In this document: positions 752 to 46,981 of the stretch, piece by piece
How positions within the stretch are numbered: the first letter of the stretch is position 1
How the letters are laid out: every line of letters starts with the position of its first letter
DNA from: Octopus bimaculoides
Taxonomy: Eukaryota
Assembly: GCF_001194135.2 (NCBI RefSeq)
Contig: NC_068982.1
Location: 129,411,677 to 129,475,676, forward strand
Length of the DNA: 64,000 nucleotides
Direction of reading: 5' to 3'
Program-made: the position numbers and the translations under genes
Notes under the pieces: model-generated
Databases searched by the model: none
What the model saw: the letters and a program-made list of their open reading frames with translations, nothing else
Told to the model about the DNA's origin: nothing

Positions 752-3700
752 CATCTTGTTATGGTATCTTCAACAGCATTAGTTAAAGCATGGCCTAAAT
801 GAAGGGAACCAGTTACATTTGGTGGAGGAATGACCATAATGAATTTTTCAGGTGGTGAACCTCCTTTGTTTTGAGACTGAAAAAATAACAATTAACATAA
901 AGAATTTGTGATCTTGTGAGAATTAAGTATTGATATTTTATTCTTTATTTCTTTTTAAAGTTAATAGTTTTCATTTTTTTAAATAACATCAAAGATTGTG
1001 ATCCGGTTACTATATACCAGTAAGTTTCATAAAGCAGTAGTGTGACAATTAATTTTAAAAAAACCTCTAATTCAGCACCAGTGAGTAGTCAGAAAAAAAA
1101 ATGGATGAACGAGAGTTATTGTCTAAAATTAATAATATACATTTGGCAAGTTAATAATGTAAAGACAGAAGAGTAGATGAGAAAAAAATATTGTCACAGA
1201 TATATACATATTTACATTCTATTAAGTTAGCAAGAACATTCTATATTATTAAAACTTATTGTTTATACAACATTATTGAAAGAATAAGGTAGCAAAATTG
1301 GTTGCAATGATGGACTAAAAACTCCCTATCTAAACTATGCTAGCATAAAAATAAAAGTTTTTAAAATTGAAGCATAAACAACTTACTAAAGCATATTCTG
1401 GCTTGAAATAGCCACATTTAACCCACCAGTCATACCAAGCAGCTTCCACATACTGTGGGCTGTATGCATCTGGCATAGAACATTTGGTATCTGAATAAAG
1501 AAAAAAAAAAAGAAATTCTAAAAAAAAAATCTAGTTTTTAGACTGGAATGTTTTTCAAAGGGGGTTCCATGAAAATAAATTGGGGAGTTCTATAAAATAA
1601 GGGATCTTTTAATAAAACTGTAAAAAAACTTATTCTATAAAAAAAAAAATTCATTATTTCAAAGTAATGAATAAATTTTTGTTCCATTTAAGGTCTTACT
1701 AGATTAGTAGGGGTGTCTGCAAAATATTGATAAGGGTTCAGTGATTTAAAAAAAATCGGAACCCGTGGAAGAGGTAGGCCCAGGAAGACCTGGGCTGAGG
1801 TGGTGAGGCAAGACCTTCGTACATTGGGCCTCACCGAGGCGATGACTACTGACCGAGACCTTTGGAAATGTGCTGTGCGTGAGAAGACCCGGCAAGCCAA
1901 GTGAGATCGTTGCCAGTGCCCCTGGACTGGCTCTTGTGCGGGTGGCACATGAGATGCACCATTTTGAGCGTGGCCGTTGCCAGTACCGCCTGACTGGCTC
2001 CCGTAGGATTTTCGAGTGAGATCGTTGCCAGTGCCCCTGGACTGGCTTGTGCGGGTGGCACATAAAAGACACCATTTCGAGCGTGGCCGTTTTCGTGCGG
2101 GTGACATGTAAAAGCACCCACTACACTCTCTGAGTGGTTGGCGTTAGGAAGGGCATCCAGCTGTAGAAACTCTGCCAAATTAGATTGGAGCCTGGTGTTG
2201 CCATCCGGTTTCACCAGTCCTCAGTCAAATCGTCCAACCCATGCTAGCATGGAAAGCGGACGTTAAACGATGATGATGATGATGATGATATAAGGGTTCC
2301 TCAACAAAATAAGTTTGGCAACTGCTGCACTAATGGGCCTCACAAGAAATTACTATTAATGGTTTTCATTGTTTTATTTGCTTGAATACATTGGTTTTCT
2401 GTTTATAGTACACACATTGCACTGTTCTACTATGATGTTATTTTGTGATGAACCTTAAGACTAATAATGTCTTAGTTTTTATTTAGGATTCATTTGAGGA
2501 GTTTCAACTTCACTGGTTGGTTAGGGTTAGGGTTAGGGTTAGGGTTAGAAGTTAAAGTTTAAAAGATTAAGATTCTGTAAAATGTCTAAAGCAAACACTG
2601 CAAAGCTTGCCTTTGATGGTAGATTACTTCAATCGGGCCTTAAACAATTTTAAATTCGTTTGCAAGTAGGATGCTAATAAATTTAATTAGAAGCAAAGCC
2701 TGTTAGAATAATTAGGAAGAAATGGTTGTTACTTGACGAATGATACAAACAAAAATGCAGTCTAAATTATTCTGAAATGCTAGGTTAGGAAATAACAAAT
2801 AAGAGTGTTGTTAATGGATAGCTAACTGTCATCATGGCCAAGCATGGTTCAGTAACCTTTACCATGCTTTTGCTAGTCGTTTTCAATGACTATATAGTTG
2901 TGAGCAGACACAAACACTTTCTCAGCCCCAAGTGTGCTGCATCAGTACTCTGGCTGGTGCTCATATTCAGCTGAGTAGACTGGAGTAATCTCAAATGAAA
3001 TGTCTTGCTCAGGGGCACAATGCACTAACTAGTACAAGAATCAAACATGACTTTACAACTGTGATTCGAACATCCTAACTACTAGACCACTGACTTTTAC
3101 ACATTCTGTTTATAATACAGTAAGAAGTTATAGATTGGGATTTGAATAAAAGATTAAGAATTTTAAGATTAACAAAATATAAAAAGAGCTGGAATAAATA
3201 TAAATAAAGAACACCATCAATTCACACCTGCCTTCTTTTAGAAGACAGACTTGTAATGGTGTTAAGCTAGATCCTCTCTAAATTCCTTCATGTAACAGTT
3301 TGATTGATTTTGCTTTTTCATAATGAATATAATTCAATACAATAATTGAAAGATTTAGAAATAAATATCAATAAATATAACCTGACAATATTCAGAATTT
3401 TGTAGCTGTAAAATATTCTGCAATAACAACACTTTTATTTTTAGAAAGAAAATTGAATAAAAGCTTCCTTACCTTTTTTCTCACCCTTTGGCGTTTGAAC
3501 ATCATAGGTTATAATGGCTCGGTCTTTTACCTTCTTTTCTTTTTTCTTCTATAATTAAAGAAAGAGATTGTGAGTAAACACATGACCATCATCATCATCA
3601 CCATCATTTAATGTCCATTTTCCATGCTGGCATGGGTTGGACAGTTTGACCAGAGACCACATTAGGCTCTATTGTCTGTTCTGGCATGGTTTCTACAGGT

Positions 3701-45200: not shown

Positions 45201-46981
45201 AGCGCTGCTATACATGACTGAAAGATTAAAGTAAAACTGAATGACTACTGACCCATTGATTAAGAGTTTGAACCTTACCACAGCTAGTGTGCTGTGTTCC
45301 TTATGAATGCACATGACCCTTGTTATGCAATCTTCATTGTGTAGCTTCAGGAGCAAAAGATTGTTCTAATATATAAATGTCTAAATTTGCACAAGTTTTA
45401 CATATTCTTGCATGAAAAATAAATGTGAACCAGTTCACAAGTTTACTATATGAACATACTATTATATGTTATATACTGTTATTGCTTTCAGATTATCGCG
45501 TTATCAACAGTTTAAAGACTTCCAGAAAAGGATATTAGTGGCAACTAATCTTTTTGGTCGTGGAATGGATATTGAAAGAGTGAATATTGTTTTCAACTAT
45601 GACATGCCTGATGATTCGGATACTTATTTACATAGAGTGAGTAAAGAGCAATTTTTCTTTTCTTTAAAGACATGATTTGATCATCTTAGATCTTGAATTT
45701 TTATCTTTTGTTGTTAACATATTTTGTTGGACTGCAACCCTTAAAAGAATGTCATTTCATTCTGTACATCATTTTATTTACAGTTTTCTGTTTTGGCTTA
45801 TGTTCAACAAAAGCCTTGCTCTTTGTTCTCTGAGATAGACAACAGCAGAGAAAGCCAACAAATTTTTATTCTGTTTCTGACAAAAGAATCTCTGCTCTCA
45901 GATGGGTTGCCCCTTACTCTAGCTTAATTAGTCCACGTTTCTAGAATACTTTAAAAATAGCAATTTTAATATAAAATTCCATAACTTTGTCTTTATTAAC
46001 ATGTAATTTTGATAGGTTTTAATTCAGATCATTCTAAACAGAAACATTGTATTATACATTGGGGACTGTCTCTGATAGGTTGGGATCAGAAGGGTTAATC
46101 AAGCTACTGCAGCTAATAGTCTCAAACAAATATTAATGCTGCTTGTGCTTTAAGGGCAGATAAGGTATAGAATGTTTGTTGGGAATAATGACCCTAGTCA
46201 CCGTATTGTCTTTTGAAAGACTTAGACCTGGATTCAGAAAACAAATTGTACCTTTATTATTTTTAAAAATTATTATAATCAACTTGTTCCATTATGAAAA
46301 AGTTGACTTAAATTAATGATAATGTGGATGATTATGACTTAGGAAAATTTTGAATTTATTCTTTCTGACTCAGCATAAATGCTGTTATAGAAGTGCTTCA
46401 AGGGATAGAACATTCACGTCTCCAAAGGCTGTTAACTGACAAAGAAGAGTGAATCTCCTATTCACAAAATGAAGCTCCAATCTAAATATTTAGTGAGCTT
46501 ACTTGTTACTACAAAGGTGCTCACCATTTTTTAATTTGACATAAAGAGATTCTGCATTAACCTCTTGGAATATATGAAATCCATGTAGTATTTGATAAAT
46601 TCCTCTCGTTGAAATAGCTGGAAATCTTACACATTTCTCCAAATATTTCAACTTTGTTGATTTTTGAAGACTTTTTCAATTTTACAGCTTTATTAATTTT
46701 AGTGATATCTTCATATTAATAACAGGTTGCCCGTGCTGGTAGATTTGGAACAAAAGGTTTGGCTATTACATTTGTCTCAGATGAAAATGATGCCAAAGTT
46801 TTAAATGATGTTCAAGACAGATTTGAAGTCAATATCACAGAACTTCCTGATGAAATAGACATATCTTCATACAGTAAGTAAAACTTATTTGTTATCATTT
46901 AATAATTTCTTTTCCTCACTAACTAAACAATTTTAATAATGCAATATATATTTTTTTTATCTTTCAGTTGAAGGCAGATAA
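39276..46981 (+). CDS. DDX39B: Spliceosome/export RNA helicase UAP56 (DDX39A/B, BAT1 ortholog), 427 aa
   Basis: Exons 39276-39483, 39824-39951, 41336-41615, 41876-41994, 43365-43496, 44192-44301, 45492-45636, 46726-46873, 46968-46981 (1284 nt, in phase). Motifs [48 protein letters not shown]-terminus [16 protein letters not shown] paralogy cannot be assigned for an invertebrate. Confidence 0.98.
40508..40955 (+). mobile_element. RTE LINE 3' UTR copy in DDX39 intron 2
   Basis: Family internal repeats and tail, ending gatgatgatgat. Confidence 0.88.
43126..43135. other. Assembly gap (10 N) inside a poly-A run
   Basis: Seen directly; the true length of DDX39 intron 4 is uncertain. Confidence 1.
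44394..44546 (-). mobile_element. RTE LINE 3' end, inverted, in DDX39 intron 6
   Basis: taacgtccgctttccatgctagcatgggttggaag...tgtagtgggtgcttt. Confidence 0.88.
44941..45207. mobile_element. hAT (Charlie-like) MITE
   Basis: TIRs cagtgcttctcaaactg / cactttgagtagcgctg; 8-bp TSD ctgtacat / ctatacat. Confidence 0.8.

Follow-up and report, generated by a model that had tools for sequence, protein, structure and literature searches.

The window analysed here is a 64,000-nucleotide stretch of the Octopus bimaculoides genome (contig NC_068982.1, positions 129,411,677 to 129,475,676), which corresponds to chromosome CM046602.1 (GCA_001194135.2) at ~129.44 Mb. Over 24334-48137 its letters are an exact reverse-complement match to the public locus on that chromosome. 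The window is AT-rich (GC ~0.33) and rich in repeats. Between positions 752 and 46981 it contains four consecutive genes, encoding an aminoacyl-tRNA synthetase (VARS), a GST-like prostaglandin E synthase (PTGES2), a small coiled-coil protein (BBLN) and an mRNA-export helicase (DDX39); the next gene is PCM1. Their order and strands, VARS(-) PTGES2(+) BBLN(-) DDX39(+), define two head-to-head pairs joined tail to tail. The initial annotation had read this cluster as an ancient microsynteny older than the vertebrate genome duplications, a proposal borne out by the adjacency of these genes in Lottia, Lineus, Owenia, Capitella and Antedon.

Gene models at the octopus locus

Gene models were built from stop-to-stop open reading frames (ORFs), tblastn with retrieved homologues and refinement at GT/AG splice sites. 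All four genes were recovered at the positions first assigned to them, with no further gene between them, as both the gene calls of three Octopus species and scans of the spacers agree. In these public gene calls, DDX39, BBLN and PTGES2 stand alone in the region equivalent to 24334-48137. The ends of the span were also confirmed, position 752 being the boundary of the last VARS exon inside the window and position 46981 the DDX39 stop codon.

VARS is encoded on the minus strand; the window includes its four most N-terminal coding exons, and the rest of the gene runs past the left edge. The coding part of exon 1 (6882-7052) starts with an ATG at 7052, ends in ...KKDDNSE and is 65% identical to the N-terminus of Owenia VARS. 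It is followed by the lysine-rich exon 2 (3468-3551), exon 3 (1387-1494) and exon 4 (752-858), which carries the HIGH motif. The boundaries of exons 2 to 4 are approximate; all three are supported by tblastx, and exon 4 additionally by Pfam and a structure match. The fragment matches the Pfam family tRNA-synt_1 (1.1e-13), and among solved structures Thermus thermophilus ValRS is the best match (2.7e-13), with LeuRS at 8.7e-5. The N-terminal exons show 75-88% tblastx identity to the PTGES2-adjacent VARS genes of Lottia, Lineus and Owenia, and these exons and the lysine-rich extension are colinear with those neighbours. The Lineus VARS neighbour also bears a Val_tRNA-synt_C domain.

The spiralian VARS proteins encoded beside PTGES2 are ~1060 aa long in Lottia and Lineus and start straight with a lysine-rich segment. 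Human VARS1 has a GST-like N-terminal domain, which seems to be absent from spiralian VARS (octopus, Lottia, Owenia and Lineus).

PTGES2, on the plus strand, comprises six exons spanning 13534-29624 and encodes 402 aa. Its exons were placed by tblastn with the O. sinensis PTGES2 protein (P0004) as query. Exon 1 (13534-13848) begins with the ATG at 13534 and exon 2 (17606-17821) contains the glutaredoxin-like CPFC motif; exons 3 (22579-22778), 4 (25460-25672) and 5 (27264-27378) precede exon 6 (29475-29624), which includes the stop codon and whose end matches the public gene call. Homologues share 55-68% identity, with one match per species among the at least 120 matches listed. An O. vulgaris record of 309 aa named 'prostaglandin E synthase 2-like' (P0007, 68%) was considered as a paralogue and rejected. 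It derives from the PTGES2 gene itself, skipping exon 4 and using another first exon; the record reflects either an isoform or a mistake in annotation.

BBLN occupies 34334-38137 on the minus strand, with two exons encoding 101 aa. The coding part of exon 1 (38011-38137) starts at the ATG at 38137 and ends at a GT donor at 38010-38009. Exon 2 (34334-34512) includes the stop codon and encodes the conserved UPF0184 coiled-coil core, as supported by Pfam and homologue matches. Once spliced, the two exons give a product with 100% identity to the Octopus UPF0184 protein (P0001), and PF03670 is matched at 7.5e-15.

DDX39 is encoded on the plus strand by nine exons (39276-46981), and its length of 427 aa agrees with the public gene call. 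Over its full length the product aligns best with human DDX39B (848.9 bits, residues 1-423), followed by DDX39A and yeast Sub2, with eIF4A at 259 bits. Alignment to homologues places the coding part of exon 1 at 39276-39483, with the ATG at 39276, exon 2 at 39824-39951, exon 3 at 41336-41615 and exon 4, ending in ...KKFMQD, at 41876-41994. Exon 5 (43365-43496) starts with PMEVYVDD... and is followed by exons 6 (44192-44301), 7 (45492-45636) and 8 (46726-46873). The short exon 9 (46968-46981) encodes IEGR and the TAA stop codon, in agreement with the public call.

Intron 4 of DDX39 contains an assembly gap of 10 N within a poly-A run (43126-43135), which is benign. The gap-free assemblies of O. 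vulgaris and O. sinensis are colinear through this position and show a short A-rich tract alone at the gap, and splicing of the exons on its two sides yields KKFMQD|PMEVYVDD, free of indels when compared with human DDX39B. The flanks are therefore continuous, with nothing coding hidden between them.

Three spacers separate the genes. The head-to-head spacer of BBLN and DDX39 (38138-39275) measures 1138 bp from ATG to ATG and is a candidate bidirectional promoter. It is free of repeats known elsewhere in the window and is 92-97% identical to that of O. vulgaris, and ~40 bp upstream of the BBLN ATG there is a consensus CCAAT box, which reads GACCAATCAG on the minus strand. The head-to-head spacer of VARS and PTGES2 (7053-13533) is longer, at 6481 bp from ATG to ATG; both distances are measured between start codons and not between transcription start sites. 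This second spacer contains a retroelement gag-like ORF and one copy resembling a short interspersed element (SINE; 11882-12055), and no further gene. The tail-to-tail spacer of PTGES2 and BBLN (29625-34333) is 4.7 kb long, and ~14% of it consists of repeats occurring elsewhere in the window.

Gene order in other animals

Loci from other animals were viewed with flanks of ±10 kb, and every absence reported below refers to that span. In the limpet Lottia gigantea (locus L004), the order and orientation of all four genes are identical to those of octopus: VARS(-) at 329-9372, PTGES2(+) at 10001-12562, UPF0184(-), the BBLN family, at 14239-14804 and a DEAD-box gene(+) at 15535-21088, all within 21 kb. 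The nemertean Lineus longissimus (L009) also carries the four genes, within 20 kb (1472-20715), as VARS(-), PTGES2(+), DEAD(-) and UPF0184(+). In the annelid Owenia fusiformis (L007), VARS(-), PTGES2(+) and DEAD(-) are adjacent, and the locus ends 1.1 kb past DDX39. A second annelid, Capitella teleta (L006), has PTGES2(+), DEAD(-) and a 104-aa gene identified as BBLN by tblastn; VARS was not found in the 10 kb upstream of PTGES2. The crinoid Antedon mediterranea (L005), a deuterostome, shows PTGES2(+), DEAD(-) and UPF0184(+), and the region upstream of PTGES2 falls outside the flank. All three Octopus species share the arrangement described above.

Adjacency is thus not an octopod peculiarity, as Lottia and Lineus have the full set side by side and Owenia, Capitella and Antedon three of its members. 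Among the animals that the initial annotation had suggested for gene-order mapping, Lottia bears all four genes and Capitella three, whereas the scallop Pecten shows no partner genes.

The identity of the neighbours is supported by several comparisons. The neighbouring DEAD genes align with octopus DDX39 over residues 1-423 with best segments of 65-89% identity, and eIF4A-type helicases score ~3-fold lower. BBLN neighbours were confirmed by PF03670 together with tblastn. Both pairs are oriented head to head in every species in which the pair is seen. The ATG-to-ATG distance between BBLN and DDX39 is 730 bp in Lottia, 1390 bp in Antedon, 492 bp in Capitella and 1285 bp in Lineus. The corresponding distance between VARS and PTGES2 is 628 bp in Lottia, 351 bp in Owenia and 1283 bp in Lineus, representing three phyla.

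No deuterostome or non-bilaterian sequence appears among the at least 120 PTGES2 matches listed. A single-sequence BBLN query returned 3 matches only; exhaustive HMMER and profile searches were added, and their named matches were mostly insects. PTGES2 and BBLN lie on contigs of unequal length in several insects and on equal-sized contigs in Argonauta hians and O. vulgaris. One ENA contig (L011), in which BBLN is intronless, showed none of the partner genes and was set aside. A metagenome scan with DDX39 returned intronless, transcript-like contigs of 1.4-3.4 kb without BBLN, PTGES2 or VARS, which are uninformative for synteny.

Several further neighbours of these genes were observed. KAP3 (KIFAP3, PF05804) adjoins PTGES2 in Limulus (L010, 1-5668) and lies two genes from BBLN in Tribolium (L012, 11679-17688), a hint that early arthropods still had PTGES2 and BBLN near each other. 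Human KIFAP3 lies at 1q24.2, inside the 1q23.3-25.3 paralogon segment. In Antedon, BBLN is followed by a member of the DAO/FAO_M/GCV_T family (L005, 13514-20627). With a C-terminus that shares only ~40% identity with human DMGDH and is similarly far from bacterial dimethylglycine oxidase, this gene is probably SARDH-like. In Capitella, BBLN is followed by a Ctr copper transporter (L006, 21870-22941). Human SARDH and SLC31A1/2 map to 9q34.2 and 9q32, respectively. The SARDH-like and Ctr neighbours, as additional 9q-type genes, would fit the same linkage group.

Ancestral order and age

The two arrangements differ in the placement of one pair. The crinoid, both annelids and the nemertean show PTGES2(+) DDX39(-) and, where it is in view, BBLN(+), whereas Lottia and Octopus show PTGES2(+) BBLN(-) DDX39(+). 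By outgroup comparison, the ancestral order is predicted to have been VARS(-) PTGES2(+) DDX39(-) BBLN(+). In the gastropod and cephalopod lineage, the DDX39/BBLN pair would then have been inverted as an intact unit, giving VARS(-) PTGES2(+) BBLN(-) DDX39(+). Comparison of Lottia with Lineus places the breakpoints of this inversion at the outer borders of the BBLN/DDX39 pair. The chiton and scallop loci are uninformative on this event. As a rare genomic change common to the limpet and the octopods, the inversion may be of phylogenetic use.

This reconstruction modifies one argument for the antiquity of the block. The interleaving of the two genes of human 9q34 between the two genes of 6p21 had been taken as the sign of a pre-duplication ancestor. 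A pre-duplication block is upheld by the comparison, but the octopus order itself appears to be the product of the mollusc inversion, and in the ancestor the genes of the two human regions would have alternated as VARS-PTGES2-DDX39-BBLN.

The shared gene order shows that molluscs, annelids and nemerteans descend from an ancestor in which all four genes were clustered, so the full cluster is at least spiralian in age. By the same evidence, PTGES2, DDX39 and BBLN can be placed together in the protostome-deuterostome ancestor.

Persistence of the block

We hold with good confidence that the locus is a very old inherited microsyntenic block composed of two divergent housekeeping pairs, VARS<->PTGES2 and DDX39<->BBLN, with the promoter function and vertebrate history proposed here. 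Each pair would share a short 5' intergenic region acting as a bidirectional promoter, and a breakpoint inside such a promoter would harm two essential genes at once and be selected against. The junction between the pairs, a short 3'-3' (or 3'-5') spacer, would offer a small and probably neutral target. Shared bidirectional promoters are, from the geometry of the locus, the likely glue. Several observations fit selection against breakpoints, namely the two 5'-5' pairs, spacers below 1.4 kb in five phyla, the inversion of one pair as a unit and the repeat-free BBLN-DDX39 spacer of octopus. Conserved ancestral gene pairs are enriched for 5'-5' orientation and short spacers, a pattern that has been read as shared cis-regulation (Irimia et al. 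2012, PMC3514665).

A number of points weigh against this interpretation. In octopus, VARS and PTGES2 are separated by 6.5 kb, more than a classical bidirectional promoter would span, and the BBLN-DDX39 spacers share 5 8-mers against 1.76 expected, a marginal excess (P ~0.04). The constraint is not absolute, as PTGES2 lacks partner genes in Pecten maximus, the chiton Liolophura, Elysia crispata and Limulus, and in Tribolium the genes around BBLN are MCM7, a nucleoside hydrolase and KAP3, with no block partners. Both pairs are dissolved in vertebrates. Antedon is the sole deuterostome in which the cluster was seen, with VARS there outside the visible flank, and the loci compared include no chordate, cnidarian or placozoan genome. 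Orthology was assigned by similarity and domain content rather than by trees. The human positions of PTGES2 and BBLN (9q34.11) and of DDX39A (19p13.12), as well as the human strand orientations, belong to general background rather than to the present comparison.

Chance shuffling within one linkage group, convergence, or an assembly or annotation artefact might in principle also bring these genes side by side. Because the four genes share one linkage group, some conserved pairs are indeed expected; for a fully shuffled group of ~1000 genes, we estimate ~2 conserved adjacent pairs per linkage group per species pair, a back-of-envelope figure of our own. However, a specified run of three adjacencies is expected, on the same estimate, at ~8/N^2, or ~1e-5 per linkage group per species pair, and yet six genera from five phyla show this run, its orientation conserved. 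This recurrence excludes chance and convergence, and the agreement of three independent Octopus assemblies, whose sole gap is a poly-A tract, excludes an artefact, which leaves these explanations a negligible probability. The main rival is instead neutral persistence, in which the block is ancient but functionless as a unit, having survived through tiny intergenic targets, slow or compact genomes and, in octopods, luck. The repeated dispersal of the block without obvious cost (Pecten, chiton, Elysia, Limulus, Tribolium and vertebrates) would suit such a history, as would the compact loci of ~20 kb in the carriers Lottia, Capitella, Owenia, Lineus and Antedon, and the growth of the octopus VARS-PTGES2 spacer to 6.5 kb with the pair unbroken. 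Yet both pairs have the 5'-5' orientation that is over-represented and best conserved among ancient pairs, the BBLN/DDX39 pair moved intact in the mollusc inversion, the block outlived the reorganisation of the coleoid genome, and the BBLN-DDX39 spacer lacks repeats within a repeat-rich window. Neutral persistence is regarded as rather unlikely.

Selection might alternatively act on the whole four-gene block as one co-regulated chromatin domain, beyond two promoter-sharing pairs. The adjacency of the pairs to each other was kept across five phyla and outlived the inversion, and conserved metazoan microsyntenies of cephalopods are significantly co-expressed (Schmidbaur et al. 2022, PMC9023564). 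However, the four genes have unrelated functions, shared enhancers are not in evidence, Capitella keeps the other three genes without VARS within 10 kb of PTGES2, and vertebrates split the block cleanly. We consider such a domain improbable, and it is a weaker rival than neutral persistence in compact genomes.

Other features of the window

Within DDX39 intron 4, a stretch of ~900 bp (41995-42900) shows 97-100% identity between O. bimaculoides and O. vulgaris. It is as conserved as the coding exons, with neighbouring introns at 85-93%, and is single-copy in the window. This stretch has no Rfam match even at E<=1, no convincing ORF and no excess of RNA folding (z=0.16), and the DDX39 loci of other phyla contain nothing similar. 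Candidate explanations are an exon that is regulated or acts as a poison exon, and a regulatory element within the intron.

The gag-like remnant in the VARS/PTGES2 spacer (10857-11591, plus strand) matches DUF7083 (4.6e-17), and the ORF after it contains a CCHC zinc knuckle. A description of this 6.5-kb spacer as transposon-filled was dropped, as ~3% of it matches window repeats elsewhere, in addition to the one gag-like ORF. An interspersed repeat family with a pseudo-ORF occurs in many copies on both strands (1849-2220, 16125-16283, 18784-19287, 20468-20683, 31339-31530 and 40732-40869), and is found in intronic and spacer sequence throughout the four genes. Another family, carrying CHAVGLNPEPCGW, lies at ~11900-12450, 20023-20229 and 27990-28313. 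Rfam and tRNA scans of the window gave no matches.

Downstream of the block, PCM1 occupies 51313-57006 on the minus strand, tail to tail with DDX39, as a single open exon of 1897 codons with a PCM1_C domain (PF15717, 3.8e-21). Human PCM1 lies at 8p22, outside the MHC paralogon, so the conserved block stops right after DDX39 in octopus.

Relation to the vertebrate MHC paralogon

In humans, the major histocompatibility complex (MHC) paralogon comprises segments at 1q23.3-25.3, 6p21.33-21.31, 9q33.2-34.3 and 19p13.2-13.11. The assignment of VARS1 and DDX39B to MHC class III, made in the initial annotation, is confirmed by a published listing of that region, which includes BAT1 (DDX39B) and VARS (then named VARS2). 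BAT1/DDX39 is moreover a classical proto-MHC anchor family. The mammalian order PTGES2-LCN2-BBLN, also put forward in the initial annotation, is found in a positional gene list for cattle, where the region orthologous to 9q34.11 reads SLC25A25, PTGES2, LCN2, BBLN, CIZ1, DNM1, GOLGA2 ... SPTAN1.

Given a block older than the protostome-deuterostome split, the simplest vertebrate history is duplication and subsequent reciprocal loss, which the split of the human genes fits. Two rounds of vertebrate genome duplication would have copied the VARS-PTGES2-DDX39-BBLN block, after which VARS1 and DDX39B would have been kept on 6p21.33, PTGES2 and BBLN on 9q34.11, and DDX39A on 19p13. One member of each former pair would thereby have been retained per chromosome (6 versus 9). 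PTGES2 and BBLN are single-copy in human and therefore not paralogon markers on their own.

The label of a proto-MHC neighbourhood, under which the locus was first described, holds in the positional sense, since the orthologues lie in paralogon segments. It does not extend to immune content, as no immune or antigen-processing gene is present among the four block genes or the adjoining PCM1, and PCM1 is not a paralogon gene. What the block offers is the possibility of tracing VARS1 and DDX39B of class III, together with PTGES2 and BBLN of 9q34.11, to one ancestral unit of 20 kb, which supports en-bloc duplication and reciprocal loss at single-gene resolution. As a small marker, it could also help to follow the MHC paralogon through the genomes of invertebrates. 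According to a 2026 study, the proto-MHC genes of amphioxus lie on one chromosome but are scattered along it, which makes a tight four-gene core somewhat more noteworthy.

More tentatively, the block may be older than Bilateria, reaching back to cnidarians or placozoans, and maintained throughout as two promoter-sharing pairs, although we presently regard this as doubtful. If true, it would be, among pieces of the chromosome ancestral to the MHC paralogon, the oldest to have stayed physically intact. The vertebrate split would then represent a natural experiment, with whole-genome duplication freeing bidirectional promoters from dual duty. The linkage of VARS1 and DDX39B would have been tight long before the 'compaction' of the MHC, which would qualify the amphioxus-based view of a scattered proto-MHC.

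Comparison with known systems

The survival of the block in a rearranged coleoid genome, anticipated by the initial annotation as notable, is confirmed, but it is not exceptional, as 275 metazoan microsyntenies are retained in the squid Euprymna (Schmidbaur et al. 2022, PMC9023564). No literature naming this block or either pair was found, and the supplements of that study carry no gene names for these genes; the block may be present anonymously in published block lists. A gene order kept for >550 million years, here in animals well known for their scrambled genomes, provides a concrete and easily checked case.

The MHC paralogon as described previously, with segments at 6p21.3, 9q33-34, 19p13 and 1q21-25 (Abi-Rached et al. 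2002; Vienne et al. 2003), resembles the present block in its DDX39 anchor, its class III genes VARS and BAT1 and its 9q34 genes PTGES2 and BBLN. The pattern observed here is consistent with en-bloc duplication followed by reciprocal loss. The two differ in scale and content, the proto-MHC being a chromosome-scale linkage, whereas the octopus-type block spans 20-46 kb and comprises four genes, none of them immune genes.

The ancient head-to-head pair HSPD1-HSPE1, an example of a bidirectional promoter (PMC3514665), shares with the pairs described here the divergent layout and deep conservation. Its spacer of ~1 kb or shorter compares with 0.35-1.4 kb from ATG to ATG for the present pairs in compact genomes. 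Its partners, HSP60 and HSP10, cooperate, whereas VARS and PTGES2, like DDX39 and BBLN, have no known functional link, and promoter sharing is suggested here by geometry alone.

A further likeness is to the ancient metazoan microsyntenies (PMC3514665, PMC9023564), in which unrelated, non-paralogous neighbours are likewise kept across phyla, mostly in 5'-5' orientation and with short spacers. The block belongs to this well-described class, which collectively numbers hundreds of blocks, and is a new explicit example of it and not a new kind of system. It is built from two adjoining bidirectional pairs of housekeeping genes rather than from a developmental regulator and its bystanders.

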